Positions 4,301 to 53,099 of a stretch of DNA of 64,000 bases are shown here, piece by piece. The DNA is from Guillardia theta CCMP2712 (Eukaryota; Protista; Cryptophyta), in assembly GCF_000315625.1 (NCBI RefSeq), contig NW_005434669.1, positions 1,152,499 through 1,216,498 on the forward strand. The letters are read 5' to 3'. The notes beneath the pieces are model-generated. The model was not told the origin of the DNA. It ran no database searches and saw only the letters and a program-made list of their open reading frames with translations. Numbering within the stretch: the stretch's first letter is position 1; each line of letters opens with the position of its first letter. Position numbers and translations under genes: made by a program.

Positions 4301-7300
4301 CGAGGGAGAAGACAATTGTGAACAAGACGTCGGAAACCTCGATCAGCCTGCGTTGAGTCGCATTCATGATGAGAAGATGTTGTGGGCAGATGTTGTCGTC
4401 GTCGCAGTCCATGACGACAGTCCCGTCGAAGTGCTCGGTCGTCATGATGAGGAAGTTGACGACTATGATAGAGATGAATACCATGTCGAGATATGAGCTG
4501 ACCCTGATACGCCTCGTCCAACTCCTGCCCTTCTCCGGCATCACGACCGGCTGCAGCATGTTCAAAAACTGAATCAGATCCTCCCGCTGGTCTGTGATCG
4601 AGATTCCCGTCCCTCCCGGCACCATCTCCCCTTCCATCAACGTGATCTGCCCTCCTGCTGATGAGGACAGCGCAGCGACGGCAGGAGTACCGCCCGCCTT
4701 CTCCGCGCTGACAAGAATCTTGCTCCCTCCCGCACCAGCCACCAGCTTCCATGCTCCCACCCGAGGGCCGAAGTCAGCTCGAAGGTGGAGCTGCTCCAGC
4801 TTCTCCATGATAACCTCGGGGATGAGCTCAGCACACTCGTCGAGGACACGAGGAGCTGCCATGGCTCTTGCGATGAGAAGGGGGAGCCTTGTGAAGGGGA
4901 CATTGTTCTTGTGAAGGTACACGTTGCTAACTGGAAAGAGCCCCAGGATCCAGAAGAAGTTTTCTTCCTCCATCAGTTGCTTCTTGTCGTCCTGGGAGAA
5001 CACAAGCCCGACAAGGTACCGCAGCCCTTCTTTCGTCAGGTAGCCCTCGGACGCGCATCCGGCAAGCGCGAAAACTTCTTTGACTGCAGTTTGAAGGTGA
5101 GTGAGTGATGGACAGCCAGACAGACAGACAAGGGGGGATAGAAAGGGAGACGGTGGGATGGAGAGGGAGGGAGGGAGGGAGGGTGAGCGGGGGGGATGGC
5201 GGGCGGTAGGGCTGCCGTGTGTGGCGCTGGGAGGGAGGGAGGGAGGGAGGGAGGGAGGGNNNNNNNNNNNNNNNNNNNNNNNNNNNNNNNNNNNNNNNNN
5301 NNNNNNNNNNNNNNNNNNNNNNNNNNNNNNNNNNNNNNNNNNNNNNNNNNNNNNNNNNNATCGACTCATATCCTCTCATCCCGTAAGTTCCATACTTCTG
5401 CTCATGAGAGGCATAGATAGCCCGAGTCCTTCTGCGATGCCTGACTCCTTTGCATAGTAGAACCTTCTCATCTTGCACCATGTTCTCAAACTCAAATCGT
5501 CAACAGACATAGGAGAAGACTACCTATGGAACTAACTTATTGTGATTCTCTCTCAGTTGGATGTTGAATGGGAACCACGCCATAAGGAACCTTGCTCTCG
5601 ATCGAGGTAGCCTCCCGGAAGGGCCTAGGGTCAGGTTTGCACCGGCATACCCAGATTGAGGGAGGAGGGGCTCGCGGTTATGTGAGCCCTCACCTTCATC
5701 TTCTGTTACGGTTACGCGCAACCTGAGCATAGAGGCGTGGAAATCTTCTATGCTAACAACTCCATCCTTGGTCTTCTCATCTAGAAAGTTGTACAAGTCG
5801 TCGTAGTTTTCCTCATCGATCTCTGACATATTGCTCTTGTCAAGCTTCAACTTGATCACTTCCAAGATCTTGAAACCAACTCAAACACAGACTAACTCGA
5901 ACAAAAGAGCAGTCACCTTGGCGAATTTCTTGGACTGGATGTTGATACTCTCGTCCGTCTCCTTGACTGCTGAGATCTTCTGCTCTTTCTGCAGCTTCTT
6001 CACGAGGAGAGTTTCAGCTCTTATCTGAGCTTTTTCCTTCTGTATCTCCCTCCTCCTGCTCCGAACCTGGTCCCTCTTATATCAGAAACATGTGCAGGAA
6101 GACGTTCAGATCGCTCGTTCTTGTTGCAAGCTTGTAAAAGAACGACGTTGCAGTAACTCGCAAGTAACACAAACATCATCAACCCAAACAACATCAACAC
6201 GTCCGCGTGTCTCGGTATAGACCAACTCACCTCTCTGTACGCCATGGCCATCACTGCCATTGCGAGATTGAGGATCCAGAAGCGTGCCAAGATGATCAGA
6301 CTGAGAAGTATGAGCGAGGAGGTGATAAGGGAGCGGAACACCTGATGAAGAAGAGCCACCCTACGGTAGGATCAAGTCCTTCCATGGCATACATCAGCGT
6401 CATGTTCCAGTTGGATAGAGAAGTTGTTGAAAAGATTGTCAGGACCGCAATCGGAAAGTTGCTAAACCCCAGGAACCCGAAGAAAGGCAACTCTGTGAAA
6501 AAAGAACAGAAATGAAGTCAAACAACAGAGAGCGATCAATATCAGCGATCAGCCACCATCAATATCGACGCAAAAAAAGCATAATTGTCATGGTCATCGT
6601 CTTCATCGTGAACAAGAGAGAGGTGCAGAACAAGGACAAGGACAAGGACAAGGACAAGGACAAGGACAAGGACAAGGACAAGGACAAGCCACAGGTGCAC
6701 TCACGAGGAGCTCCGGTGTTGGTTTGATCCAGTAGAGATCCTGTAGGGCTTCGGCGGCAACCCGGATGGAGCTCGGCAAAACTTATGTCTGAGAGATTCT
6801 CTGAGGGAGGTTTGCAGGAGCACTCAAAGAAATCTTCTTCGCAGCCTCCGCCTGATGGGCCACACACTCTGAGAGGGATCTGAACGCATCTCATGATCAA
6901 ACAATGGCATCATATCAGCCTCGTTCACCTGCATCTCTCCAAATGTCGGCTCCTTGTTCGTAAAGTTCGATGGAACGATCCCGTACATTCTTTGATCCCA
7001 CGTGGCCGCAAGAGTGTTGCCATCTGCTACAACACACTTGCCATAGAAAGAGCCATCAATACCGTACAAGTTGATCCCCAGGATCGAATAGATGAAGACG
7101 ATGAAGCTGAAGAGAACCAACAGGTTCGTCATGGACGACCGACTAGCAGGAATGACCCGGAGAACATCCATAGGCCCCTCCAGGTTGCGCAGAGCTCGTA
7201 GAGGACGGAAGAGTCGCAGGACCTTGGCCATGCGACCGATGTCAGCCGAAGCTTGTTTGTCAATGGCTGCAACGATGAACACAATCCAGCAAACGCAAAC

Positions 7301-16600: not shown

Positions 16601-19600
16601 ATGATTACTAGAATGGTTACTAGAATGTTTCCTTCCCTCAACAACAAAACCGTTTTCGCACATCTTGTGTTGGCGCTGTTGGGCTTCGTACACGTTCAAG
16701 GAGATCGATGTACCGACGTCCCAACGTCCAGATGCTGCCCGGATGGCATCAAACATCTCGAGAGCAAGAACACGACCATCCCCATGCATCCTGTCGACAG
16801 AGAGGCTCTGGTGAACTTCCGACGCGCCATTGGGAAGCATGACGGGCTGCTCAACAACTGGTATATTGACGATCCGAGCTCGCATCCGTGTGACTGGTCA
16901 GGAGTGATCTGTGACTGCTGTGCGCTGTATCCAGCGGATGGGTTGGACTTCTGCGACGGCATCGACACCACCTACCAGCATGTCTACCACCTTGACTTCG
17001 GCCCTTCCAAGCCTTCGAACAAACGCCTCAATGGCTATCTGTCGCCCTATCTTGGGAATCTGACGGAGCTGAGGCTGGCGTATCTTCATGTGAATGAGTT
17101 CTCTGGAGAGATTCCCCGAGAGATGGCGAGGCTGCAGAAGCTGCAGAGGCTGGTGCTTCGTGACAACCAGCTGACGGGTCCTCTGCCGGCCGAGCTGGGC
17201 TCCATGCTCGCGCTGAAAGATCTCAACGTCGAGGTGAACAAGTTTGAAGGAGCGATACCGCTGGAATGGTGCAACCTGATAAAGTCTGTCAATAGCAAAA
17301 AGTTGCTGGACGTCAACATTGTTACACCAGCCAACAACCCAAGTCTCTGCGGCCCTGTGCCCGAGTGTCTTGTGAAGCAGGGAAAGCTGCGTACTGCCAA
17401 CGTGGTAGGAACGTTTCTACAGGTCGACGACTCGGTGGACAACCCCGGGAGGGTACAGGGAGTGTGCGACCTGACCCCGGCAGTGTGCAGGGCGGAGGAG
17501 GGGTGCGGCATCAGGTCGGAGACGGTGATCGCGTCGCTGCAGGAGTTCTCGTTCGAGTTCCCGGAGTTCTCGGACCCGGACAGCGGGATGCGGTCCTACT
17601 ACTGGGGGATAGACATGTGCGACGACGAGACCTCCTGCCACGATCGAGACGACGCCATGGCCTTCACTGCCTTGACGGCCATCTCGTACAAGACCTCGGA
17701 CGGGCTGACCATGTACCGGCAGAAGTACAAGGCCAACGGGCTCGCGCTGATCAACGGAGGGTGGTACAAGATCTTGCTGAAGGGATACAACGGGGCTGGG
17801 CCTCCTCTGTCGACGACGATATCGTCCAGGCCGTTCCTGGTGGACTCGACGCCTCCGCTGCCGTCTACTATCTATGACTCGCAGTTCTGCAAGGAGCCGA
17901 TTTTGGTTCAAGACAACGCAGTGCTGGAGGCGTGCTGGTCAGACTTCGTGGAGGCTGAGTCAAGCGTAGTGCGGTATGAGTATCGCGTGCACAAGCGCAG
18001 GAGAGACGGAGAGAGCTCCGAGGCCGTGGGCGAATGGAAGAGCGTCAACAAGACGGCGTACACAGCAAGGACCGGTCGTTATGCCGTGTCTGAGAGCGGG
18101 TACAGGCTAGAGGACGGGTGGGTCTACTTCTATGAGGTGAGAGCGACCAACGCAGCCGGGCTCAAGTCGAGCAGCTCGAGTCGAGGGGTGCTGTACTCGC
18201 CGACCAACCAACGGCTTCTGCTGGCGATCATCCTGTCCGTGATCATTCCTGTGGTGTTGCTGGGCTGCCTGGGGGGATGGGCGTACAAGCGGATGGAGCA
18301 CCACTACCAGCACGTGGAGCAGCAGGAGAGGAGGAGGAAGCATCAGATGGACAGCATGAAGGAGATCTACGACGTGCTTGTTATGAAGCCTTCGCCCTTG
18401 GTCGGGAAGCCTTGCCCGTCGTCTTTAGACGCGAGTCACGATCTGAAAATGCATCATAGTGAAAGAGTGCGTGGAGAGTGTGACATGATGGATCAGCGAG
18501 CAGAGGCTGTCTTCACAGCTGAGAACGTAACCTTCGTCATCACCGACATGGAGTCCAGCACGCTTCTAGCTGAGACCAACCCCGCCCTCTTCCGGGAGAT
18601 CCTCGAGATCCACGACGCGCTTGTGCGGCAGCTGGTGGACGAGTACTCGGGGTACGAGGTCATGTCGCAGGGCGACTCCTTCGAGCTCGCCTTCGTCGAG
18701 CCGTCTCTCGCCGTCTGCTTCTGCAACGCCCTGCAGACGCGGCTGATGAAGCACGAGTGGGACAAGCGGGTGCTGGGCCTGTCGGGGTGCGAGGAGATGT
18801 ACGACGAGCACGAGAGGCTGGTGTACCGGGGGCCGCGAGTGAGGGTGGGAGCGCACCTGGCGAGGAAGGGAAGGGACTTCACGGTGAGGATCCACGACAT
18901 CACGCGGGACATGGTGTTCGAGGGGGAGGGGTACAAGATCGCTCAGGCGATAGGGAACGGGGCGCAAGGGGGTCAGACGCTGATCTCGCAGGAGCTGTTC
19001 GAGGCCATCTCCTTCTGCTCCGGACTGTACAAGGCAGGCAACCCGATCCTGCACGAGCTGGGGGTGTACCAGGTGGGAGGAGACAGCAGCAGCGTCAAGG
19101 GGACTCAGGTCAAGCTCTACCAGCTGTCTGGACCAGTGTGGAAGCTGCCGACGGAGCCTGTGCGAGGGTTTAGCGGGAGCCTGCGAGGGCTTCACCAGGT
19201 GACGGAGGGGCGGCAGCTGCGCGTGCACCCGCTCGAGCAGTCCTTGTCGCTGGCGAGGATGAACACGACGTGCGTGTGTCTGGGGGTGGTGGGGGTGCCG
19301 GGGAGCAGGCGGGCTCTTGCTGAGGCGTGGATGAGAGAGACGGCGACGCTGGTGGCGCAGAGCTTCCGGGGGCACGTGATGGAAGGAGAGGGGGAGGAGG
19401 AGACGTTTGTGGTGTTTCCCAACCCCAAGTACGCGACTCACTTCGCCATGACCGCGCAGGTCGTCCTGCTGCACTCGACGCTGCCGTTCGAGGGGCTGCC
19501 GGACCTGTACAAGGAGGAGCACGGCATCGACGGGCAGCTGCTGTACGCGGGGCCGCGGGTGGGGATGGGGATGGTGACGTTGGAGGGGATGCTTCGGGAG

Positions 19601-20569
19601 TCAGAGGCAGCGCTGACGGAGGACCTGGAGGGTCTGATGGCGGGGGCGAGCAGGACGAGGCGACTGGCGCATGGGGGGCAGGTGGTGCTGGACGAGAAGA
19701 GCTGGAAGTACATGAGGAACATGATGCCGAGCCGCTGCGTGGGCATCGACCTGGGGGCTCACTGGCTGGGGGGCGGGGCCTCGGGGAGCGGAGAGGTGCA
19801 GAAGCTGTACGAGATGAGCCCGAGCGTGCTGGCAGGACGATGGTTCCCGTCGATCGAGTCAGAGAGGATGGTGAGCAGGGGGTACCGGGAGTCGCCGGAC
19901 CCGAAGCAGGGGATCGCGGTGATGTTCCTACGGCTCAAGGAGGCGGCGAGCGCGGGGCCGGAGGCGGAGGAGAGCTGGAGGGAGGGGCAGGAGAAGATCG
20001 GGCAGATCCTGCGACAGGCGCTGGAGGAGTACGGCGGGTACGAGTGCAAGGAGGCAGAGGCGGGGAAGTTCACGCTGGTGTTCGACGACCTGGGGATGGC
20101 CATGGCCTTCGGGCTGACGGTGCAGAAGGAGTGGGAGGCGCTGTGGGAGCCTTGGGGGAAGAGGAGGGAGGGAGAGGACGAGGGGCGGGGGAAGGAGGAG
20201 GAGCAGGGCAGGAAGTCGTCGCTGCAGGTGGGGCTGGCGTACGGGACGGAAGCGTTCAGGAAGCCGCTGGTGAGCGGGAGAGCAGACTACTTCGGGGCTC
20301 TGCCCAACCTGGCGGCGAGGATCATGTCGCAGGCGGAGGGAGGGCAGCTCCTGCTGGAGTACGAGGGGGCGATAGCGTGGATGCGGAAGGAGGGGAGGGA
20401 GCTGCCGGGGGTGGGGAGGAACGCGGTGGTGGAGGTGGACTTGAAGGGGGAGGGAGGAGGGAGGCGGAGGGTGGAGCTGAGCGTGGCGGGGGTGTACCAG
20501 CTGAAGGGGGTAGAGCGGGAGAGGGTCTTGGCAGAGCCGGTGCTGAGGCCACTGGAATGGGGACGGTGA
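16601..20569 (+). CDS. Receptor-type adenylyl cyclase copy A: signal peptide - LRRNT/LRR - FN3-like - TM - 3x class III cyclase homology domains
   Basis: Intronless 1322-aa ORF (start may be 16625). Plant-type LRR cap (DREALVNF...W...CDWSGVIC) and LxxLxLxxNxF/LxGxI/LP repeats; beta-rich FN3-like region (YFYEVRATNAAGL); TM LLLAIILSVIIPVVLLGCLGGWAY; cyclase motifs TFVITDMESST, QGDSF, GPRVRVG, GYECKE, DYFGALPNLAAR, AEGGQ. Confidence 0.9.
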   Translation: MITRMVTRMFPSLNNKTVFAHLVLALLGFVHVQGDRCTDVPTSRCCPDGIKHLESKNTTIPMHPVDREALVNFRRAIGKHDGLLNNWYIDDPSSHPCDWSGVICDCCALYPADGLDFCDGIDTTYQHVYHLDFGPSKPSNKRLNGYLSPYLGNLTELRLAYLHVNEFSGEIPREMARLQKLQRLVLRDNQLTGPLPAELGSMLALKDLNVEVNKFEGAIPLEWCNLIKSVNSKKLLDVNIVTPANNPSLCGPVPECLVKQGKLRTANVVGTFLQVDDSVDNPGRVQGVCDLTPAVCRAEEGCGIRSETVIASLQEFSFEFPEFSDPDSGMRSYYWGIDMCDDETSCHDRDDAMAFTALTAISYKTSDGLTMYRQKYKANGLALINGGWYKILLKGYNGAGPPLSTTISSRPFLVDSTPPLPSTIYDSQFCKEPILVQDNAVLEACWSDFVEAESSVVRYEYRVHKRRRDGESSEAVGEWKSVNKTAYTARTGRYAVSESGYRLEDGWVYFYEVRATNAAGLKSSSSSRGVLYSPTNQRLLLAIILSVIIPVVLLGCLGGWAYKRMEHHYQHVEQQERRRKHQMDSMKEIYDVLVMKPSPLVGKPCPSSLDASHDLKMHHSERVRGECDMMDQRAEAVFTAENVTFVITDMESSTLLAETNPALFREILEIHDALVRQLVDEYSGYEVMSQGDSFELAFVEPSLAVCFCNALQTRLMKHEWDKRVLGLSGCEEMYDEHERLVYRGPRVRVGAHLARKGRDFTVRIHDITRDMVFEGEGYKIAQAIGNGAQGGQTLISQELFEAISFCSGLYKAGNPILHELGVYQVGGDSSSVKGTQVKLYQLSGPVWKLPTEPVRGFSGSLRGLHQVTEGRQLRVHPLEQSLSLARMNTTCVCLGVVGVPGSRRALAEAWMRETATLVAQSFRGHVMEGEGEEETFVVFPNPKYATHFAMTAQVVLLHSTLPFEGLPDLYKEEHGIDGQLLYAGPRVGMGMVTLEGMLRESEAALTEDLEGLMAGASRTRRLAHGGQVVLDEKSWKYMRNMMPSRCVGIDLGAHWLGGGASGSGEVQKLYEMSPSVLAGRWFPSIESERMVSRGYRESPDPKQGIAVMFLRLKEAASAGPEAEESWREGQEKIGQILRQALEEYGGYECKEAEAGKFTLVFDDLGMAMAFGLTVQKEWEALWEPWGKRREGEDEGRGKEEEQGRKSSLQVGLAYGTEAFRKPLVSGRADYFGALPNLAARIMSQAEGGQLLLEYEGAIAWMRKEGRELPGVGRNAVVEVDLKGEGGGRRRVELSVAGVYQLKGVERERVLAEPVLRPLEWGR

Positions 20570-23500
20570 TTGAACTGAAGGCGATGGGATAGTTGACTAA
20601 GATGTCAGTCAGATGAATTTAGTATAAGAACTTGAATCATGAATCGTGACTGACCTGTGGGGCACCGTTAGGCTGGGCCGCGGGGCGGTTCAATGTTGAC
20701 CGGCCGGTCTGACTCAGTGTCAATAGGGCCCGGTCCACTTCACTGTGCAACATCCTGAGTCACCGGGCCCCGGATAGTCACTGTGACGGTGGTCGGGTTG
20801 ACTCATCCTGAGCCAGGCCCGAACCCTGGAACTTGCACGAACCACATCCCCACTATGTCCCAATCCTTTATATGGTCCACCCCAACCTGAACTGAACCCC
20901 TCAAATTCTTGCCGTTGAAGTACCTACCGGGTACTTCCGTTATATACCTGGTTTAGTACCCTTACTTCAAACACTTTGACAGACGGTCCATCTGTCTCTT
21001 GCCCAGAGTCCACCCCCTCATTCTCCCACCACCCCCACCCCCACTTCCTACGCCTCATTTGGGTTCATCAGTTCACGTGGCGAGACTCGAGCTCCTCCGC
21101 CATGAATCTCAACAAGAAGACCATCGCCGATGTCGACGTCAAGGACAAGCGCGTTCTCATGCGCGTCGACTTCAACGTCCCTCAGGACAAGTCCTCTGGT
21201 GCCATCACCAACGTCCAGCGCATCGTCGGAGCCATGCCGACCATTCAGAAGGCTCTTGACAACGGCGCCAAGGCGGTCATCCTTATGTCCCACTTGGGCC
21301 GCCCTGACGGCAAGCCGAACGCCAAGATGACCCTCAAGCCCGTCGCCGACAAGCTCGGAGAGCTCATGAACAAGCCCGTCACCTTTCTCCCTGACTGCGT
21401 CGGCCCTGAGGTCGAGGCTGCATGCGCAAACCCAGCTCATGGCTCCATCATCCTGCTTGAGAACCTTCGCTGGCACGTGGAGGAGGAGGGCAAGGGCATC
21501 GAGCATTCCGCCAGCTGCAACGGCAAGAAGTGCTCTGATGACTGCAAGCCGTTCAAGGCCACCCCTGAAGAAGTCACCAAGTTCCGCGAGTCTCTTTCCA
21601 AGCTCGGAGATGTCTACGTCAACGACGCCTTCGGCACAGCTCATCGCGCCCACTCATCCATGGTTGGCATGAAGGGCAAGATGCCTTGCGTCAGCGGTCT
21701 CCTCGTTGCCAAGGAGCTCGAGGCCTTCTCAAGCGTGCTCAACCCGGACAAGGTCAAGAGACCTCTCCTCGCCATCGTTGGAGGGGCCAAGATCTCCGAC
21801 AAGATTATGGTAATTGAGAATCTGATCGACCAGTCCGACGGAATCATCCTCTGCGGTGGCATGGCCTACACCTTCATGAAGGTCTGCTTTGGCATGTCCA
21901 TCGGCAAGAGCCTTTACGACCAGAAGGGTGAAGTCTCTTCCCTTCCTCTCCCTAACTTTCGCACACTTGTGATCTCGTTTCATTGTTGCTTTCCCTCCTC
22001 CAGTCCTCTCCGACTTCTTCTCTGTCTCCGTGCATGTTGCATGCTATTTCACCTCTTCGTCTTGCTCCTCTAGGATGATCTCTTCCTGCTGTCTCAGTTA
22101 CGCTCACGCTTCTACCAACTGAGACCTGTCTTTGCAGGAGCCGAGCTGGCCCCCAAGCTGATGGAGAAGGCTAAGACCAAGGGGATTGAGATCGTTCTGC
22201 CCTGCGACTGGGCCTGCGGCCAGGAGTTTAAGAACGATCAAGAGATCAAGTTTGTGACCAAGGAGGAGGGCATCCCCGACGGCTGGGAGGGAATGGACTG
22301 CGGGCCTGAGTCGATGAAGCTCTTCCGCGACAAGATCCTCTCCTCCAAGACCGTCGTGTGGAACGGACCAGCTGGAGTGTTCGAGTTCGACAACTTCTCC
22401 AAGGGAACCAAGGCTCTCCTCGACGCGGTCGCTGAGACAACAGCTGCTGGAAACAACGGAATCATTGGAGGAGGAGACTCTGCCACTGCTGCTGCCAAGT
22501 TCAACATGGAGGATCAGGTTTCCTTCGTGTCCACAGGCGGAGGAGCATCCTTGGAGCTGCTTGAGGGCAAGATCTTGCCAGGCATTGAGGCGTTGGATGA
22601 CAACTAAACATTCAATAAATTAATTTCAAGTGAGCAGGACGGGAATGACATAATGGTGTTGCTGATGAAACAACTTGAGAACTCAGTGTTTTGAACATTT
22701 ACCACGACCAAACGACAATCCTTGGGCAAACAGCATCGCCACCAGCAAGCGTAAGGTGACATGGAAAAAGTGACAACAAATGACTCAGGCCTTGGCTGGG
22801 AGCCGCGTGGCTGCCCCTTCAGCTTACGCCGCACTCAGAGGTCAAGGGCTGAAAGTTCAATCCACCCTCGAACAAATGTCGGGGTCTCTGAACACGCAGC
22901 ACACACGGCCCTGCGACATTCCTTCAACAAGTAACCCGTACGTCAGTCACGATTTCTTATACCAACTTCATTGCTAAACAAACTCACTGACTGACTTCAG
23001 TCACATTCCTCAGCCCGTGCTCCTACTCCTCCCCTTCCAGTGGCATCAGCACCGGCTCTGCCAAGACCCTCTCCCGCTCTACCCCCTTCAGCTGGTACAC
23101 CCCCGCCACGCTCAGCTCCACCCTCCGCCTCCCTCCTCCCTCCCCCTTCAAGTCCACCTCCACCACCGCGTTCCTCCCCACCCCCGGCAGCTCCCTCCCC
23201 TCCTTCCGCATCCACGCTATCGCCCCCTCGTACTCCAGCAGGAGCTGCCCTCCCTCCGCCTGCGACATGATCCTCGCCGCCAGGTTGGGCAGAGCCCCGA
23301 AGTAGTCTGCTCTCCCGCTCACCAGCGGCTTCCTGAACGCTTCCGTCCCGTACGCCAGCCCCACCTGCAGCGACGACTTCCTGCCCTGCTCCTCCTCCTT
23401 CCCCCGCCCCTCGTCCTCTCCCTCCCTCCTCTTCCCCCAAGGCTCCCACAGCGCCTCCCACTCCTTCTGCACCGTCAGCCCGAAGGCCATGGCCATCCCC

Positions 23501-26500
23501 AGGTCGTCGAACACCAGCGTGAACTTCCCCGCCTCCGCCTCCTTGCACTCGTACCCGCCGTACTCCTCCAGCGCCTGTCGCAGGATCTGCCCGATCTTCT
23601 CCTGCCCCTCCCTCCAGCTCTCCTCCGCCTCCGGCCCCGCGCTCGCCGCCTCCTTGAGCCGTAGGAACATCACCGCGATCCCCTGCTTCGGGTCCGGCGA
23701 CTCCCGGTACCCCCTGCTCACCATCCTCTCCGACTCGATCGACGGGAACCATCGTCCTGCCAGCACGCTCGGGCTCATCTCGTACAGCTTCTGCACCTCT
23801 CCGCTCCCCGAGGCCCCGCCCCCCAGCAAGTGAGCCCCCAGGTCGATGCCCACGCAGCGGCTCGGCATCATGTTCCTCATGTACTTCCAGCTCTTCTCGT
23901 CCAGCACCACCTGCCCCCCATGCGCCAGTCGCCTCGTCCTGCTCGCCCCCGCCATCAGACCCTCCAGGTCCTCCGTCAGCGCTGCCTCTGACTCCCGAAG
24001 CATCCCCTCCAACGTCACCATCCCCATCCCCACCCGCGGCCCCGCGTACAGCAGCTGCCCGTCGATGCCGTGCTCCTCCTTGTACAGGTCCGGCAGCCCC
24101 TCGAACGGCAGCGTCGAGTGCAGCAGGACGACCTGCGCGGTCATGGCGAAGTGAGTCGCGTACTTGGGGTTGGGAAACACCACAAACGTCTCCTCCTCCC
24201 CCTCTCCTTCCATCACGTGCCCCCGGAAGCTCTGCGCCACCAGCGTCGCCGTCTCTCTCATCCACGCCTCAGCAAGAGCCCGCCTGCTCCCCGGCACCCC
24301 CACCACCCCCAGACACACGCACGTCGTGTTCATCCTCGCCAGCGACAAGGACTGCTCGAGCGGGTGCACGCGCAGCTGCCGCCCCTCCGTCACCTGGTGA
24401 AGCCCTCGCAGGCTCCCGCTAAACCCCCGCACAGGCTCCGTCGGCAGCTTCCACACTGGTCCAGACAGCTGGTAGAGCTTGACCTGCGTCCCCTTGACGC
24501 TGCTGCTGTCTCCTCCCACCTGGTACACCCCCAGCTCGTGCAGGATCGGGTTGCCTGCCTTGTACAGTCCGGAGCAGAAGGAGATGGCCTCGAACAGCTC
24601 CTGCGAGATCAGCGTCTGACCCCCTTGCGCCCCGTTCCCTATCGCCTGAGCGATCTTGTACCCCTCCCCCTCGAACACCATGTCCCGCGTGATGTCGTGG
24701 ATCCTGACCGTGAAGTCCCTTCCCTTCCTCGCCAGGTGCTCTCCCACCCTCACTCGCGGCCCCCGGTACACCAGCCTCTCGTGCTCGTCGTACATCTCCT
24801 CGCACCCCGACAGGCCCAGCACCCGCTTGTCCCACTCGTGCTTCATCAGCCGCGTCTGCAGGGCGTTGCAGAAGCAGACGGCGAGAGACGGCTCGACGAA
24901 GGCGAGCTCGAAGGAGTCGCCCTGCGACATGACCTCGTACCCCGAGTACTCGTCCACCAGCTGCCGCACAAGCGCGTCGTGGATCTCGAGGATCTCCCGG
25001 AAGAGGGCGGGGTTGGTCTCAGCTAGAAGCGTGCTGGACTCCATGTCGGTGATGACGAAGGTTACGTTCTCAGCTGTGAAGACAGCCTCTGCTCGCTGAT
25101 CCATCAGTGATGAGGCAGTGTCTGACGTCTCGTCTCCATCCTCACTCTCTTCTTTTTCCTCACCGATGACCTCAAGACGTGGAACGACTTGTCCAGTAAT
25201 AGGCAGCGGCATAAAGGCAAGCACGTCGTAGATCTCCTTCATGCTGTCCATCTGATGCTTCCTCCTCCTCTCCTGCTGCTCCACGTGCTGGTAGTAGTGC
25301 TCCATCCGCTTGTACGCCCATCCCCCCAGGCAGCCCAGCAACACCACAGGAATGATCACGGACAGGATGATCGCCAGCAGAAGCCGTTGGTTGGTCGGCG
25401 AGTACAGCACCCCTCGACTCGAGCTGCTCGACTTGAGCCCGGCTGCGTTGGTCGCTCTCACCTCATAGAAGTAGACCCACCCGTCCTCTAGCCTGTACCC
25501 GCTCTCAGACACGGCATAACGACCGGTCCTTGCTGTGTACGCCGTCTTGTTGACGCTCTTCCATTCGCCCACGGCCTCGGAGCTTTCTCCGTCTCTCCTG
25601 CGCTTGTGCACGCGATACTCATACCGCACTACGCTTGACTCAGCCTCCACGAAGTCTGACCAGCACGCCTCCAGCACCTCGTCTACTCGTGCAGTATCCT
25701 CCTCCTTGCAGAACTGCGAGTCATAGATAGTAGACGGCAGCGGAGGCGTCGAGTCCACCAGGAACGGCCTGGACGATATCGTCGTCGACAGAGGAGGCCC
25801 AGCCCCGTTGTATCCCTTCAGCAAGATCTTGTACCACCCTCCGTTGATCAGCGCGAGCCCGTTGGCCTTGTACTGCTGCCGGTACATGGTCAGCCCGTCC
25901 GAGGTCTTGTACGAGAAGGCCGTCAAGGCAGTGAAGGCCATGGCGTCGTCTCGATCGTGGCAGGAGGTCTCGTCGTCGCACATGTCTATCCCCCAGTAGT
26001 AGGACCGCATCCCGCTGTCCGGGTCCGAGAACTCCGGGAACTCGAACGAGAACTCCTGCAGCGACGCGATCACCGTCTCCGACCTGATGCCGCACCCCTC
26101 CTCCGCCCTGCACACTGCCGGGGTCAGGTCGCACACTCCCTGTACCCTCCCGGGGTTGTCCACCGAGTCGTCGACCTGTAGAAACGTTCCTACCACATGC
26201 GCGGTACGCAGCTTTCCCTGCTTCACAAGACACTCGGGCACAGGGCCGCAGAGACTTGGGTTGTTCGCCGGATGAACAACATTGATGTCGATGAGCTTGT
26301 TGCTATTGACAGACTTTATCAGGTTGCACCATTCCAGCGGTATCGCCCCTTCAAACTTGTTGACATCAAAGTACAGGTCCTTCAGCGCGAGCATGGAGCC
26401 CAGCTCGGCCGGCAGAGGACCCGTCAGCTGGTTGTCTCGCAGTAGAAGTCTCTGCAGCTTCTGCAGCCTCGCCATCTCTCGGGGAATCTCTCCAGAGAAC

Positions 26501-26933
26501 TCATTCACATGAAGATACGCCAGCCTCAGCTCCGTCAGATTCCCAAGATAGGGCGACAGATAGCCATTGAGGCGTTTGTTCGAAGGCTTGGAAGGGCCGA
26601 AGTCAAGGTGGTAAACATGCTGGTAGGTGGTGTCGATGCCGTCGCAGAAGTCCAACCCATCCGCTGGATACAGCGCACAGCAGTCACAGATCACTCCTGA
26701 CCAGTCACACGGATGCGAGCTCGGATCGTCAATATACCAGTTGTTGAGCAGCCCGTCATGCTTCCCAATGGCACGTCGGAAATTCACCAGAGCCTCTCTG
26801 TCGACAGGATGCATGGGGATGGTCGTGTTCTTGCTCTCGAGATGTTTGATGCCATTCGGGCAGCATCTTGACGTTGGGACGTCGGTACATCGATCTCCTA
26901 GAACGTGTATGAAGCCCGACAGCGCCAACACAA
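16665..26933. repeat. ~3.9-kb inverted duplication (arms 16665-20557 and 23035-26933) enclosing PGK
   Basis: The arms are reverse complements and nearly identical except for discrete patches. Homology is essentially limited to the CDSs. Confidence 0.95.
21102..22607 (+). CDS. PGK: Phosphoglycerate kinase, probably cytosolic (exons 21102-21927, 22138-22607)
   Basis: Motifs [62 protein letters not shown]. Phase-1 GT-AG intron 21928-22137. Strong C3 codon bias. No targeting leader. Confidence 0.97.
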
Positions 26934-26976
26934 CAACAGAGAGCCAGTGTTTTGCAGGAGGTCGCGACAGGAGCAT
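23023..26976 (-). CDS. Receptor-type adenylyl cyclase copy B (same architecture as copy A)
   Basis: Intronless 1317-aa ORF, near-identical paralog of 16601..20569. Confidence 0.9.
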   Translation of the reverse strand: MLLSRPPAKHWLSVVVLALSGFIHVLGDRCTDVPTSRCCPNGIKHLESKNTTIPMHPVDREALVNFRRAIGKHDGLLNNWYIDDPSSHPCDWSGVICDCCALYPADGLDFCDGIDTTYQHVYHLDFGPSKPSNKRLNGYLSPYLGNLTELRLAYLHVNEFSGEIPREMARLQKLQRLLLRDNQLTGPLPAELGSMLALKDLYFDVNKFEGAIPLEWCNLIKSVNSNKLIDINVVHPANNPSLCGPVPECLVKQGKLRTAHVVGTFLQVDDSVDNPGRVQGVCDLTPAVCRAEEGCGIRSETVIASLQEFSFEFPEFSDPDSGMRSYYWGIDMCDDETSCHDRDDAMAFTALTAFSYKTSDGLTMYRQQYKANGLALINGGWYKILLKGYNGAGPPLSTTISSRPFLVDSTPPLPSTIYDSQFCKEEDTARVDEVLEACWSDFVEAESSVVRYEYRVHKRRRDGESSEAVGEWKSVNKTAYTARTGRYAVSESGYRLEDGWVYFYEVRATNAAGLKSSSSSRGVLYSPTNQRLLLAIILSVIIPVVLLGCLGGWAYKRMEHYYQHVEQQERRRKHQMDSMKEIYDVLAFMPLPITGQVVPRLEVIGEEKEESEDGDETSDTASSLMDQRAEAVFTAENVTFVITDMESSTLLAETNPALFREILEIHDALVRQLVDEYSGYEVMSQGDSFELAFVEPSLAVCFCNALQTRLMKHEWDKRVLGLSGCEEMYDEHERLVYRGPRVRVGEHLARKGRDFTVRIHDITRDMVFEGEGYKIAQAIGNGAQGGQTLISQELFEAISFCSGLYKAGNPILHELGVYQVGGDSSSVKGTQVKLYQLSGPVWKLPTEPVRGFSGSLRGLHQVTEGRQLRVHPLEQSLSLARMNTTCVCLGVVGVPGSRRALAEAWMRETATLVAQSFRGHVMEGEGEEETFVVFPNPKYATHFAMTAQVVLLHSTLPFEGLPDLYKEEHGIDGQLLYAGPRVGMGMVTLEGMLRESEAALTEDLEGLMAGASRTRRLAHGGQVVLDEKSWKYMRNMMPSRCVGIDLGAHLLGGGASGSGEVQKLYEMSPSVLAGRWFPSIESERMVSRGYRESPDPKQGIAVMFLRLKEAASAGPEAEESWREGQEKIGQILRQALEEYGGYECKEAEAGKFTLVFDDLGMAMAFGLTVQKEWEALWEPWGKRREGEDEGRGKEEEQGRKSSLQVGLAYGTEAFRKPLVSGRADYFGALPNLAARIMSQAEGGQLLLEYEGAIAWMRKEGRELPGVGRNAVVEVDLKGEGGGRRRVELSVAGVYQLKGVERERVLAEPVLMPLEGEE

Positions 26977-27532: not shown

Positions 27533-30500
27533 ATGAGACATCTTGTTCCTGCTGCTTCACTCCTTGTTGCCCTTCATCTCGAGGTTCCTTGTACACCCTT
27601 GAGTTCGGATTTTCTCAGTGAACCTCTAGCAAGTCTTATCGTTCCATACGATCCCTTCCATCCGGACAAGAGCAGGTGTCTTCTCATCTCGTCTGAACAC
27701 TCCTCCTCACTGTTGGATAGCAAACCTCCGCGCACAACACCTCAACCAGAATGACACTCCGTTCATCGAGGCGCTGTTGGTAACCACTCTACCTGGAATC
27801 TTCAGGTTCAGTCACAAGATAGCAACCAGCGAGCAAGCCGCAAAGTCAAGACTTCCTTCTTCTTCCCTGGGCATCAGCTGGGCAGGTAGATGGTGGTATC
27901 GTACTCGCAACGTTCTTGCTGATGTTTGCCGGCAGAGGAACTCCATCAGTGTTGGACCACAACGTCATGTGCGGCAAATCGGTGATGCTTCTGAGCACGA
28001 TCCTGATGGTTTCTGATCGCTCCTCAACAGACAGAAATTCTCAAGTATGACCTTCCAGAGGACATCGAAGACATCGACTGCCTGAGGTCTTGCACGTCGA
28101 CCCTGCTCTGACTCTCGCTCTCTGCTCATGCGCTTTCACGTGGCAAGCTTTCCCGAAGGTCCGATCAAGCATGCACAAGATCTGGCCTCTTCACTCTTCG
28201 GTGACAGCATCAACCCCTCCTCCCCCTCTTTCCCTGATCGATCTCGCCATGTCGTGTGATCCGATGATGCAGGAGCGAGGTCGACTTTCTTCCTGTGCAA
28301 CGGCAGCACGGTAGGGATTCTTGCCTCGGTGTTCGCGAGCATGCAGGCAAGAGCGTTCCCCTGCTCGTGTCTATTTTCTGACGAGTTTCTTACAGCTTTT
28401 CAAACGGTCAAGACGAACGATGTCGGAAAGGTTCACTAGGCTTTAAGCGTTATCTGGTACACTGACAGTTTCCTGACCTGTCGACTAGACCGCCGGTTGT
28501 CATCTTGCCCAGGTCAATGTTTTCTTTTGTCGAGACGTTGCAATCATGGGAGGAACAGAAATTGTCACAAATCTTCGATTCAAGCTTTGATCATCTCGGG
28601 AGCTCAACCAGGTGTGGACGCTGACTCGCATGCATGCATTGTATCTGTGATGGGTTTGTCAACTGCACACTCACGAAGATGGTCAGTGTTCCTCAACCCC
28701 GAGCTCGACACAACCTTCGACGTTCATCATGGCTTCAACATGGAGGAAAGAAAATCTCATGCACCAATAAGACGATGATGATGAGCCTACAAACAGGATC
28801 TTGAAGAGGCCTTGGCAGCAAATGAAGGGAACGTTGCAGCAGTCCTGATGGTACATGCTGCTCTCGGGGCAGGAGAAGTTTTCCTCATCGTTATCAGTTG
28901 TCGCCGACATACTATGGATCGATCCTGGATGTTAGAGCAGTTCAGCAAAGACTTCGTCAAGGTGGGCAGCTATCGTATCAACTCCATTTCGTCCTCCCAC
29001 TTTGACCGCAGAGGAATGCTGGATCCCACTTATCGTGGATGAAGCCCACGGATCGCATCTCCGTAAGTCTCCTTAAGCTTCTTCATCTGTATCCATTTCC
29101 TCTCTCTCACTTATCCATCTGATCTCCTAGCGTTTTTGTCTTGTTTCCTCCTACGATCCTGCCGCTCTTTCTCCACATGAACCCCTTGCCCCTCGTGGAG
29201 GATAAGCCTTGCGACTCGTGTTTTGTCCTGTGATCTCACCGATCTTCATATTTCCTGCAGGTTTCCTCGCCGACGCAGGTCATCTTCCTCCTTGCGACGG
29301 CCTATCCTCAGGTGCTGATTTGGTTGTTCAGAGCATTCACAAGGTGAGGAGGAGGAGGAGGAGGAGGAGGAGGAGGAGGAGGAGGAGGAGGAGGAGGAGG
29401 AGGAGGAGGAGGAGGAGGAGGAAACCCGCACTGACTAGCAACAGACTCTCACGTCACTTACACAATCATCTCTTCTTCATGTCGGAGGGGCGGAGGGAAG
29501 GAGCGGGGATAGGGAGGATCTCACTCGAGCTATTGCTGTTGCCCTGGACATGCTACAGAGCTCAAGTCCCTCATCACTGTGAGATGTGCATCCTTGCCAG
29601 TGAATGAGATAAAAAACTCTTTAATCGGCATGAGTGTAATAACGATGCTGCTGCTGCTGCTTTTATTATTGCTTTTGCTTTTGCTTTTACTATTGCTTTT
29701 GCTTTTGCTTTTACTATTGCTTTTGCTTTTGCTTTTGCTTTTGCTTTTGCTTTTGCTTTTGCTTTTGCTTTTGCTTTTGCTTTTGCTTTTGCTTTTGCTT
29801 TTGCTTTTGCTTTTGCTTTTGCTTTTGCTATTTCTATTAGTTGTTGATGATGGTGGTGATAGAGATGTCCTTGTTGTTGGTGATAGTGATTGTGAAGAGC
29901 ATCTGACAATGTTTGCAGACTTCTAGCTTCTCTTGATGCTACAAGGTGTTTTGTTGGTTTCCATCTCACTAGTGAGACATTGTAAAGATGGCAGTTTGGA
30001 AGTGAGGGAGGAGGAGGTAGAGAGAAACTTACTGCTGTCTCCCAATTGTCTAACAGGACAAGGAGGGCTATAAGTGAGATTTGCACCTCTACCGTCTTAC
30101 AATGACATCGTTCAAGGGCGACTCAAACACTTCAAGCTGCTAGAGCAGGAGCACCGCATTCAGACTTGTATCGCACTGGACCCTCTGCGTCTCACCCTTC
30201 TCACTCCTCACGGACTCTCCGCGGAGGACGCGGCGGAGCTTCTTGAGAGCAGGTGTGAGACAAACGAGGGTTGCTGAAGCTGCTGAGGAGGAGGCAGGCA
30301 TGGAGTGTACGTCGAGATATCGGAGGGTCGTCTCCTCACCGCAGCTCTCGGAATTGCTTCAACTGCACAAGACTGTGCCAAGCTTGTACGAGGTGACAAT
30401 CAGGAGGATGTTGACTACTTTGACTCGCATGACAGGCCTCCGTGTGCTGGACCAACAGGCCAGTTCTAGCCACAGAGAACGAGAGGAGAGAGCGGGGATG

Positions 30501-38760: not shown

Positions 38761-40150
38761 GATGACAGACTTTTTTGCGACAGAACGAGCGGCTGGAGAA
38801 CTTGATAGTGTCTTCGACCATCTCAGCGTTTCACAAAGACGCGTTGCTGATGCCACTGCCTGGAGACTTGACAAGCGTGAGCAAGGGCTGTTTGGGATCT
38901 ATCTTTGAACTAAGACGTCGATTCATACGCTTCAGATCAAGAATCATATTGTTGTGACATTGAAGAGAAACAACGGTTGTCCAGAGGATATTCTAGGGCA
39001 AGGTTGTTATTAACTTATTGAGCAGATTCGGCATCAGCACGAGTTGGAGTTGGACTAGAAATTCAAATGATTGCCCTGGTAGAAATTGTATCATCAACCT
39101 GAAAGTTGACTTGTAGTGAAGGGCCAATTCTTGATCACATCCGTTCTGCCGAATGTGACTTGTTCTCTAGTCGCCTTCCGACTTGATTCAATGATTGCCA
39201 GGGATCGGCAGCAAACTGTGGGAGAATCTTTCCAGGGATGCAACTTGTTGCAGTCAATGACATCAGACTAGTGGATAAGAAACTACACGTAAGGAATTTT
39301 GAGCAGGTTATGAATTCTGAGCAAGAATTCAACATTTGTGATAGGATGTTTCAAGACTCATCCTTGGAGAGCCGAACACGGAAGTCAAACTTACGCTCAT
39401 CAAGGCATGATTGCTGGCTGAGGGGTTTTCAACGACATGACTGCATTGTTTTGCAGAGCTACTTCACAGACGCGGAGAAGGTAAATGACTTCATTGATCG
39501 ATGTTAATGAAATCGATTCCTGTCAGTCCATCAAACATGGCTTGCAGCTTACCAATCAGAGTCTGACTCAACTGATTGAGGTGGGGTCAAACCAACACAA
39601 TTTGTCCTCATAGCATGATTCGTGTGTATGTTGTACGTGACGGATTAGGTACAGAACTACAACAATGCAAGATTCAGTCAGCGAGGATACGATGGTGAGT
39701 CCTTGACCTTTTGCTCCATGTTGAAGATGTTCTCTTGCTTCCTGGTCGGAGCTGGGGCTTCTGACTTACGTTTTGTGACGTATGATATAATACTGTTTGT
39801 CGAGCAGGCTACCAGGTCATCGCTAGCTTGCCAATGATACAATGATCGTGACTTGGAAATCTCAGGAGCCATTGGTTCCAACCCGAATCGTCAATTTTGC
39901 TTACAAGCAGGAGGAGGAATTTGCAGGCAGAGGACATGTCAGCTCACACATCTTTTACAGCAGCTCGTCGTTACCTCCTGCTACACCTCAGACTCCTTTC
40001 ACTCCGATGCAACATGTTCCAGCAGCAATGGTCAACGGCCAGTTTCCTACGGTGAAAGCAGCTCCGGCCGGCGCTGAGTTTCTGCGGCGAATGGTTTAAG
40101 AGCTGTTGCACATTCTCAGCAGCTCAGCAGCAGCACGCTGTCCAAGTCCG
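38761..40150 (+). CDS. PDZ-domain-containing exons (possibly the 5' part of the downstream kinase gene)
   Basis: ARVGVGLEI / GQFLITS / GSAANCGRIFPGMQLVAVNDIRL / DVSRLILGEPNTEVKLTLIK match the PDZ consensus. Confidence 0.65.
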
Positions 40151-40179
40151 TAAGCATTCAGCCGACGACGTCGACAGAA

Positions 40180-40180
40180 A

Positions 40181-40211
<31 letters not shown>

Positions 40212-40386
40212 GGCAGGATCAGAAGCAGGGGCAGGGGCAGGGGCAGGGGCAGGGGCAGGAGCAGAAGCAGGGGCAGGGGCAGGGGCAGGGGCAGGGGCAG
40301 GGGCAGGGGCAGGGGCAGGTGCAGGTGCAGGTGCAGGTAAAGGAGCAGAAGCAGGAGCAGGAGCAGGCGCAGGCGCAGGCGCAGGC

Positions 40387-40460
<74 letters not shown>

Positions 40461-40538
40461 ATTCTACCGGCTGTTTGGGAGCAGCAATCTCTTCAAGTCA
40501 GTGAGCGTGAAGCCATCGGTATCAACGGTTGGGGGACG

Positions 40539-40576
<38 letters not shown>

Positions 40577-40638
40577 CAGAAGCAGCAGAAGCAGGTGCAG
40601 GTGCAGGTGCAGGTGCAGGTGCAGGTGCAGGTGCAGGT

Positions 40639-40687
<49 letters not shown>

Positions 40688-40690
40688 ACA
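40180..40690. repeat. (GCAGG[A/G/T])n hexanucleotide array
   Basis: Direct read; two blocks. Confidence 0.9.
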
Positions 40691-42008
40691 ACCAACAAAC
40701 CAGTCTGACAGTGCCGCGCGAGCCCGTACGTTACATGATGACGATCAAGAAGAAAGTGACTGTTTACAGATGAAGAACATAGAAGTAAAGAGCGCTGGAG
40801 AACTAGCAAGTCATTTTGTTCCGCTGAGCCATGTGAATCGAAAACTTGAAGTTTCCTGGGTGACTGACTGTCAACAAGGCGAGTTCTCAGCAAGCAGGAG
40901 GGCAGCAGATGGTTGGAAGAGAACCAGAGAATGCAGGGAATGTGCATGCGGAAGTTGGAGAGCTGCTAGAAGATGAAGAAAGTATTCCTCATGATCCTTT
41001 CGATGTTGAGAAAGAGCAGCAGGGTATGTTATGACTGCATGCTTGTGTTTGTTTACAATTGACAGCTTTACCCAGGGGCTCCTCTATCATCAGATTTATC
41101 AAAGTGTGTTATAAAGATTTCTTTCTGTTTGTTGTTCCTTGTAATCTCTTGCGTTCAGCTGGCCGATCAAAGCGTGCAGTCAAGGAGTTTCTCTGCAAAC
41201 AGTCCTGATGAAAACGGACGACAAGACCTCTACGGTCGCTGTGGTACTTGATATTGAGAGTATGCTTTTCTTTCTAATGACCTTGCGCTGTCAGACCCAG
41301 ACAGGACGCTATGAAGAGGTCAGAAGGAAATCTTGCTTTCTCAAAAATGATCCATGTTGTTAGGTTGTTGTCCTCAAAGTCTTGCAAGCATCAGGTAAGA
41401 ACATTTCTTCTTCACGTGTGTTTGCGCTCACTTTCTTTCAGCCGATTCAAGGATGAAACGCAGAATGATGCGGGAGGTGCTATACTTTTCTGCCCGCCCC
41501 GTTCCTCCTGATCGTGCATCAACCTCTTCTCCTCCCCCTTCACTCTCCCTCTTCCTCCTCCTCCTCTGAGCGACATCAAGGTCGAACTGCTCTCGCACGT
41601 TCTACATCCCAACATCATTCAGGAATTTTCGTCTCCTCGTGCTTCAGTTCATAACCTTCTCAGCAGTCGAGGAACCGAGGGAGGGAGGAGGATGGTCGGG
41701 TTTGGACTTGGAACTCGTACGCGTACGGCTTGTAAGCATGGAAGGAGGCGGAGAGGGGAATGGCGATAAGGAAGAGCTTGAGAAAAGTGAGGGGAGGTAG
41801 AGGGAAGGAGAGCAAGGGGGATCAAATGATTTTGAAGAATTTCTTATCTTCTTGCAGGAAAGTTGATTCTTTTATACAAGAATATGAAGTGATGCAACCA
41901 GAAGTTGTAGCCCTGGTCGTGAAAGGTAAAATTAATGTTGACAAGATAATCAAAAGCGACATCGTGAATGTCATCATCATCATCATTATCATCATTATCA
42001 TCATAATT

Positions 42009-52038: not shown

Positions 52039-52458
52039 CGTGATTAGCTTTGATATGTCTTCTCAACATTTGTTCTCACAGCTCGTCGTTGTATCTCTCG
52101 TCAACGCTACTCTGTCGCCATCGCATTCCATTCTGGATTTCCTTGTGGTCAAAGTCCATTCAAGCTCCCCTCAGGGCTTTACTAACACAAGATGTAGGAC
52201 AGCACCCCCCAGTACGGCGATGACTATTTATTTGTTGTTATAAAGACAGAGGCAGTATACCTGCTGAAACATTGCCATGCCACGGATGGAGATGAAGGTG
52301 AAGAAGAGGACGGATAAAGACGTAACAATGAGGAAGCTTCTATGATTGTGATGTTCATTCGAAGTGATGAGAGGGGGATGACGCTGATGCTGCTGCCTGA
52401 AAAGACTGTTACGGGTATCCTTGAGAAAAGTTGACCTGAACCAGGCCGTCCCCACTTG

Positions 52459-52543
52459 GGGAGGGAGGGAGGGAGGGAGGGAGGGAGGGAGGGAGGGAGG
52501 GAGGGAGGGAGGGAGGGAGGGAGGGAGGGAGGGAGGGAGGGAG
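52459..52543. repeat. (GGGA)n microsatellite
   Basis: Direct read. Confidence 0.95.
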
Positions 52544-53099
52544 ATTATCAAAACAGCTTTTAGTTTACCTTCAAGATAACATCTGTGCCGTATGCACCAC
52601 CATTTATCATGAACTCAAGAGCGGTGTCCGGCAGGTACCTGAGATGTCTTGCGGGCATTGCAAGTCGACCATCGAAAGAGAGGTTGCCCTCCCTCTTTGT
52701 CTGGCCCCTTGCTCGCAAACCTCATTATCTCAGCAGGTGGGAAAGATTGAGGGAGTGAAATCAGTAGTTGCGAATCATGAAACGAAAGATGTACAGGTCG
52801 CCTTTTGATATCTTCCTTCCTTGATTTTTTTGTTTTTGAATTGTTTTGATCGCCAGGTGGAGTTCAGCGATCCTGCAACTTGGCAGAACATTCGACAAGT
52901 TCTGATAGATAACGAATTTCCACCCGAGAATGAGAAGGAAGTTTGAAAGTTTGAAATTTACACATACACAAGCATCTGCTGGAGAATCATCATAATGACT
53001 GTGGTTTGACTCTTTCAGATGGGAATGAGATTGCAATGATCATGCCCCTCTTCTTGTCTGTTCTATATTTCCCACCACGCTACCGCACAGCAATGACTG

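Follow-up and report, generated by a model that had tools for sequence, protein, structure and literature searches.

Two LRR-receptor-cyclase genes inverted around PGK in Guillardia theta: a probable old duplication homogenised by gene conversion

In the nuclear DNA of the cryptophyte Guillardia theta CCMP2712, two leucine-rich-repeat (LRR) receptor-cyclase genes, here called A and B, lie tail to tail on either side of a PGK gene and make up the two arms of an inverted repeat. We consider it probable (roughly 0.8) that this is an old inverted duplication around PGK, whose arms have been homogenised by repeated GC-biased gene conversion between them. The locus is part of scaffold JH992969.1 of the 2012 draft assembly (GCA_000315625.1). 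The whole stretch of DNA analysed, 64 kb, is called the window and its positions are used throughout; window positions 11102-32607 correspond to JH992969.1 1163600-1185105, with every base matching. The genes and the parts of the repeat are as follows:

16601..20569, forward strand: gene A, an intronless open reading frame of 1322 amino acids (aa)
23023..26976, reverse strand: gene B, an intronless open reading frame of 1317 aa, convergent with A and of the same architecture
16665..20561, forward strand: arm A of the inverted repeat, 3,897 nucleotides (nt), with about 1.9-fold the read depth of the spacer in the X29 reads described below
23031..26933, reverse strand: arm B of the inverted repeat, 3,903 nt, from the repeat search and the alignment
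20562..23030, no strand: unique spacer of 2,469 nt, with the 3' untranslated region (UTR) of A, PGK and its own upstream region, and the 3' UTR of B
21102..22607, forward strand: PGK gene, with an exon at 21102-21927, an intron at 21928-22137 (GT..AG) and an exon at 22138-22607

The repeat search returned three collinear inverted blocks, namely 16665-17896/25702-26933 (97% identity), 17916-18380/25218-25682 (99%) and 18486-20561/23031-25106 (2,076 nt, approx. 100%). In a global MAFFT alignment the arms are 98-100% identical per 100 nt over most of their length, with three dips, and beyond 16665-20561 the identity of A and B is at random level. In A the homology sets in at codon 22, inside the hydrophobic signal-peptide core, and it breaks off three codons ahead of the stop. 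The first-pass annotation of this DNA had described two tail-to-tail arms of about 3.9 kb around a PGK spacer of about 2.5 kb, homologous from within the signal peptide to about three codons before the stops, and it is confirmed on each of these counts by the repeat search, the alignment, the hydropathy profile and the spacer length. No further long repeat was found within the window, and no additional LRR-cyclase paralogue within it either. Two inverted copies on one chromosome, with a unique spacer between them, constitute the structure of a gene palindrome.

Four runs were compared with window positions 17061-23060: raw 38-nt chromatin immunoprecipitation (ChIP) DNA reads of 2026 (X29), k=31 contigs of a genomic run of 2021 (X2), bubble-popped contigs (k=31) from a 'freshwater metagenome' run (X16), and a 3'-biased RNA-seq run (X24). 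Neither the reads, of 38-60 nt, nor the k=31 contigs, which break or pop wherever the paralogues differ, span the near-identical stretch of the arms (2.1-3.9 kb). An inverted repeat of this kind could be an assembly artefact, produced by collapse or false duplication of a repeat or by a chimeric join into a palindrome. In favour of this, the scaffold is a 2012 draft with a gap of 100 N at 5260-5359, and its consensus is contradicted at 20540 by each of the four runs and at 19279 and 19594 by X29 and X16. The reads, however, speak for two real copies. X29 covers 17461-20460 at a mean depth of 19.7 and 21261-23060 at 10.2, and the ratio of 1.9 is the one expected if reads from both copies fall on arm A. 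At paralogue sites about 50% of these reads carry the B allele (from approx. 30% to 65% at 17681, 17723, 18013, 18302, 18852, 18886, 19105 and 20056). Across the whole 6 kb just 18 places are variable in X29, which means that the near-identity of the arms is real in the DNA and not a product of consensus building. Contig 15 of X2 runs from 20510 across the entire spacer to beyond 23060, so that inverted arm ends flank PGK on both sides in independent data, and another X2 contig has, between 18380 and 18486, the 111 different letters of B's juxtamembrane version. Both juxtamembrane versions, as well as both versions of the diverged patch in the LRR region (patch 1, below), occur in other runs. 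Read depth, which the first-pass annotation had named as the safeguard against assembly collapse, thus excludes a collapse, and the view of the repeat as an artefact is already contradicted and can be regarded as excluded.

The divergence of the arms, followed by sliding-window alignment and by synonymous divergence (dS) as had been proposed earlier, is a mosaic and not uniform, with dS of 0-0.046 in some segments against 0.39 or saturation in others. The segments are listed below with dS and the ratio of nonsynonymous to synonymous divergence (dN/dS), both by the Nei-Gojobori method, and with the GC content at third codon positions (GC3):

16665-17148: segment 1, dS 0.046, GC3 0.69
17149-17401 (in B, 26197-26449): patch 1, in the LRR region, dS 0.39, dN/dS 0.18, GC3 0.68
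17402-17896: segment 2, 495 nt, dS 0, GC3 0.87
17897-17920 (in B, 25678-25701): patch 2, eight ectodomain codons, dS about 1, saturated
17921-18380: segment 3, 460 nt, dS 0.019, GC3 0.82
18381-18485 (in B, 25107-25217): patch 3, the juxtamembrane linker, dS saturated, unalignable (z-score 0.4)
18486-20561: cyclase block, 2,076 nt, dS 0.012, GC3 0.90

The most homogenised tract is the cyclase block, where the assembly has 7 single-base differences. The raw X29 reads hold a second allele, absent from the assembly, at 19279, 19594 and 20540, and with such read-only sites counted the paralogue differences in the block are about 11 in all; the earlier description of cyclase regions that differ by scattered single bases only is therefore accurate. 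The differences are strongly clustered along the arms. The longest identical run is 598 nt, while 20,000 permutations gave at most 370 nt (P = 0.0006 when only third positions are used), and the variance of differences per 100 nt is 21 times their mean. Since the identity extends to synonymous sites, selection on the protein cannot be its cause.

The patches are of a different nature. Patch 1 has 32 substitutions, mostly at third codon positions, and such differences under purifying selection point to old divergence and not to fast adaptive change. Positive selection on patch 1 is not supported (dN/dS 0.18), and none of the selection tests on the escaped islands was significant. The residue differences of patch 1 include V185L, N209Y and E211D, and in a manual alignment of the LxxLxLxxN repeats they are at variable positions of the LRR beta-strand. 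Patch 2 encodes PILVQDNA in A and EDTARVDE in B, with no detectable similarity, and patch 3 is 105 nt long in A and 111 nt in B.

The same mosaic could also come from a recent duplication, with dS of about 0.01, whose ends coincided by chance with the coding ends and in which the patches were later written into one copy, through conversion by other family members elsewhere in the genome or through local replacement. The repeat boundaries inside the coding sequence are indeed sharp, patches 2 and 3 cannot be aligned at all, unlike sequence that has drifted gradually, and other loci represented in X2 have short stretches in common with the arm. Nevertheless, the sequence beyond the arms tells of a greater age. 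The 3' flanks of A and B retain about 70 nt at approx. 70% identity, starting 25 nt past the stops (z-score 7.6; in A about 20594-20661), and this diverged 3' UTR homology means that the duplicated unit ran beyond the stop codon and is old. The divergence of this remnant (approx. 30%) comes close to the dS of patch 1, which itself differs chiefly at synonymous sites. A non-coding part diverged to this extent contradicts a recent duplication. In addition, both patch versions are found in a strain that is approx. 1% diverged, a distance greater than that between the paralogues in the homogenised blocks, and within the window there is no other LRR-cyclase paralogue from which patches could be written in. 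In view of this, we hold a recent duplication to be quite unlikely.

With regard to the flanks, promoters and UTRs had both been described as dissimilar between the two genes. This stands for the 5' flanks, which show no significant similarity (z-score 2.9), and almost, though not entirely, for the 3' UTRs, on account of the diverged remnant just described. Two short elements belong to these 3' UTRs:

20604..20654, forward strand: 3' UTR element of A, inside the diverged remnant, with the stem GTCAGTCA...TGACTGAC, just ahead of the end of RNA coverage
22942..22995, reverse strand: 3' UTR element of B, with the same stem pair and a fold z-score of -3.4

The 8-nt stem pair GTCAGTCA/TGACTGAC encloses a diverged loop of 35-38 nt and has 2 matches in the window, where 0 are expected. 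The shared stem is a candidate structured RNA, with a fold that is significant in B only (z-score -3.4) and not in A (z-score -0.2).

The strain that dates the patches is the source of X16. Across PGK it differs from the window by approx. 1% (13 differences in 1,377 nt), and its contigs hold the A version of patch 1 together with the exact B version (loose ends equal to 26266-26295), a B-like patch 2 with 3 changes, and the 111-nt juxtamembrane version of B in patch 3. The presence of both patch versions in X16 implies that the paralogue-specific patches are older than the split of the strains. Paralogue differences in segment 2 and the cyclase block come to approx. 0.35-0.5%, while the strain-specific ones amount to approx. 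0.6-0.8% among the differences listed, on bubble-popped X16 contigs. Paralogues that are closer to each other than strains are would be the pattern of concerted evolution, for which these figures are suggestive only. Two metagenome scans for a related strain, one with a protein pattern and the other with an exact 26-mer beside the juxtamembrane patch, gave no matches. Over 17061-22639, X16 also has 11 nt inserted after 20657 and lacks 3 nt at 21518, and the run is labelled freshwater, whereas G. theta CCMP2712 is a marine culture strain. The X16 sequences may stem from a close relative, from contamination or from a spike-in.

A further line of evidence for conversion comes from base composition. 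When pooled, the homogenised segments have a GC3 of 0.88 (n=1010) and the other parts one of 0.66 (n=289; Fisher's test, 4e-16), and in the ectodomain alone GC3 is 0.84 in homogenised and 0.68 in other sequence (P = 3e-5). In patches 2 and 3 of both copies GC3 is 0.38-0.54, and in the neighbouring open reading frames and PGK 0.39-0.72. Hence, GC3 rises with the degree of homogenisation inside one gene, as GC-biased gene conversion predicts.

To put these observations together, a gene for a class III cyclase with an LRR ectodomain would have been duplicated tail to tail, with PGK in the spacer. Repeated non-allelic conversion within the chromosome, presumably through break repair that copies from the other arm, would then have overwritten most of the coding sequence, the latest and most frequent events having affected the 2.1-kb cyclase block and the two ectodomain blocks. 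Patches 1-3 and the flanks, once they had drifted or acquired indels, would have offered no homology for heteroduplex formation, and selection for differing ligand-binding or linker properties may also shield the patches. A GC bias of the conversion would have raised the GC3 of the converted tracts to about 0.9, and the process is probably still ongoing. The first-pass annotation had likewise suggested an older duplication kept alike by gene conversion, with a few patches escaping, and the dS mosaic, the clustering of differences, the 3' UTR divergence, the patches of X16 and GC3 all support it.

Several points count against this explanation. Divergence in patches 2 and 3 greatly exceeds that of patch 1 and of the 3' UTR remnant, so that a single age of duplication needs extra assumptions, either fast-evolving linkers or sequence replacement. 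The patches may also have been brought in from a third paralogue at another genomic location. X2 contigs leave the arm at 17686, 18322, 18767, 20183 and 20443 into sequence that is not in the window, and these loose ends mean that other genome loci share short stretches with the arm; such loci may be further paralogues or low-complexity matches. The comparison within and between species is made on bubble-popped k=31 metagenome contigs with no proper outgroup, and the GC3 contrast is a correlation only. In the end, the conflicts between assembly and reads at 19279, 19594 and 20540 make the single-base detail of the arms not fully reliable. At 19279 (T/C) and 19594 (T/G), X29 has two alleles (the second in 36-43% of reads) and X16 the alternative one, while both copies in the assembly have the same base; at 20540 all four runs have A and both assembly copies G. 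Probably the draft consensus of this near-identical repeat is wrong at these sites, although they may mark a real change between cultures. We considered the mismatches as direct proof of recent conversion and rejected this, since draft consensus error fits equally well.

As for the genes themselves, proteins A and B are 94% identical and consist of a signal peptide, an LRRNT_2 domain with LRRs, a further, unassigned ectodomain part, one transmembrane helix, a juxtamembrane linker and three class III cyclase-homology folds. Pfam places LRRNT_2 and the LRRs in the N-terminal third and gives a weak Guanylate_cyc match, and the helix (residues about 538-560) lies at the single strong hydropathy peak, residues 534-560. 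The best PDB sequence match of the cytosolic 698 residues is GRESAG4.1, a receptor adenylate cyclase of trypanosomes (1.7e-17), with matching stretches in the first fold (TDMESS, GDSF) and the third (ADYFGALPNLAAR). The AlphaFold (AF2) model has a mean predicted local distance difference test (pLDDT) score of 62, above 80 in the first fold, and it displays three successive beta-alpha-beta-beta-alpha-beta units of the cyclase type; for this model Foldseek returns class III cyclases, the top two being GRESAG4.3 (1fx4) and GRESAG4.1 (1fx2). The three folds span 18524-20548, i.e., residues about 642-842, 891-1072 and 1105-1316 of protein A. According to the GRESAG4.1 alignment, the metal-binding aspartates (TD..E, GDSF) are in the first fold only and the N..AR motif in the third only, so no one fold carries both the aspartate and the Asn/Arg motifs. 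From their domain layout, A and B are classed as receptor-type class III cyclases with an LRR ectodomain, with catalysis only predicted.

A search with the cyclase region, restricted to proteins of 0.55 to 1.75 times the query length, found 17 relatives, of which the best two are JGI metagenome proteins with 31-32% identity. These two best metagenomic relatives (P0121, P0122) have the triple-fold layout as well. No orthologue for a tree was found among the 17. A word search for the family with the whole protein was swamped by LRR proteins and gave no information. Public annotation represents each of the two receptor-cyclase genes by only two fragments, of 81 aa and 147 aa, and exact look-ups found the full-length proteins of 1322 aa and 1317 aa absent from the protein collections. 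The locus thus reveals two full-length receptor genes with an LRR ectodomain and three cyclase folds, which are fragmented in public annotation.

The two genes are not expressed alike. In X24 the 3' end of A (20461-20660) is covered to a sense depth of 86, which then drops to zero, while sense depth on the 3' UTR of B (22661-23060) is approx. 1-2. At 20540, 117 of 124 X24 reads have the base that the X2 spacer contig ties to copy A, and approx. 6% are of the B type. In the one RNA run examined, A is thus expressed at least tenfold above B, which agrees with the unrelated 5' regions of the two genes.

Inverted arms may, in addition to converting each other, cross over. Such crossovers would flip the PGK segment, so that both orientations coexist, and those upstream of the juxtamembrane patch would create chimeric receptors; all this is compatible with an old duplication under gene conversion. 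The geometry is suitable for it, as the arms are inverted and contain perfectly identical runs of up to 598 nt as well as a 2.1-kb block that is approx. 99.5% identical, and in human Y palindrome P6 inversions accompany arm-to-arm conversion, although rarely (PMC3723533). A crossover between the arms would join the 5' part of A to the 3' part of B and vice versa. In the cyclase block, the likeliest site, it would flip PGK but would exchange only a handful of single-nucleotide differences, the last three codons and the 3' UTRs; the combinations of ectodomain and juxtamembrane linker would stay unswapped, and the near-parental products would have little functional consequence. New combinations of ectodomain and juxtamembrane linker would require a crossover in segment 2 or segment 3. 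Nothing points to a dedicated recombinase or to specific sites. We see inversion as a plausible by-product of the geometry, and the joint proposal of a coexisting inverted orientation and chimeric receptors as tentative and rather doubtful. Mixed A/B alleles in contigs 10 and 13 of X2 and chimeric patterns in X2 and X16 were considered as recombinants and rejected, because bubble popping yields them.

The PGK gene in the spacer encodes 431 aa with no obvious N-terminal targeting extension and with a Pfam PGK match of 7.5e-90. It is single-copy, its spliced translation is 100% identical to GUITHDRAFT_91943 (P0138), and the sense RNA depth at its 3' end is 29 in X24. Between the 3' end of A and the PGK start codon, over 20661-21260, the X29 ChIP depth falls to 2-6, compared with approx. 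10 in the remaining spacer; this dip may be an open promoter region or an effect of mapping or ChIP.

Elsewhere in the window, long microsatellites and short-period repeats are present at 5159-5257, 29327-29445, 29622-29873, 40125-40747 and 52437-52551. Their types are (GAG)n, (TGCTTT)n, (GGGA)n and an array of GCAGGN with a 6/12-nt period within likely coding sequence, and a (GGGA)n run adjoins the N gap.

A literature search found nothing on this locus, on inverted pairs of nuclear genes in G. theta or on its LRR cyclases, and no comparable gene palindrome described in cryptophytes. As to gene conversion in G. theta, the one paper on GC-biased conversion found to name the species concerns the nucleomorph only. 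The locus offers a compact case of probable concerted evolution in a gene palindrome, with age markers and a GC3 signature. On the practical side, individual bases within such arms cannot be trusted in the 2012 assembly, and the gene pair needs paralogue-aware mapping. To hypothesize further, gene palindromes of G. theta could be a genome-wide device, in which paired receptor or surface-protein paralogues are kept alike by GC-biased conversion, differ in short islands that face the ligand or lie in linkers, and undergo occasional crossovers which invert the segment between them and reshuffle these islands between two genes under different regulation. We consider this very unlikely; if true, it would be a eukaryotic counterpart of the logic of shufflons and phase variation.

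Among known systems, linked paralogues such as the globin, opsin and RHD/RHCE-type pairs undergo concerted evolution with mosaic tracts. The G. theta pair resembles them in tracts limited to the coding sequence, in diverged flanks and in persisting islands of divergence, and differs from them in gene family and lineage, its islands being an LRR patch and a juxtamembrane linker. Isomers of the plastid inverted repeat and the yeast 2-micron plasmid are examples of flip-flop inversion between inverted repeats. Here as well inverted repeats flank a unique segment, which a homologous crossover would invert; unlike in those systems, inversion here is a prediction from the geometry, and no recombinase is implicated.

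In their domain layout, A and B are similar to trypanosomatid GRESAG4/ESAG4, which are single-pass receptors with a large ectodomain and a cytosolic class III cyclase. However, the ectodomain here is of the plant-type LRR kind (LRRNT_2) and theirs has a periplasmic-binding-protein fold, and there are three cyclase-homology folds here versus one.

The closest structural likeness is to the palindromes of mammalian sex chromosomes. Some differences are clear: G. theta is a cryptophyte with no known link to sex chromosomes, conversion is deduced here from one genome and a fragmentary second strain, and the arms measure 3.9 kb against tens of kilobases to megabases. The identity along the arms of sex-chromosome palindromes is above 99.9%, while here it concerns one coding sequence with diverged patches inside. 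On the other hand, the palindromes P1-P8 of the human Y and those of the primate X likewise have gene-bearing inverted arms around a unique spacer, and their arm identity is held by GC-biased intrachromosomal conversion with occasional inversions (PMC3723533, PMC8981503, PMC8600007), the GC bias being documented for primate palindromes (PMC8981503, PMC3723533).

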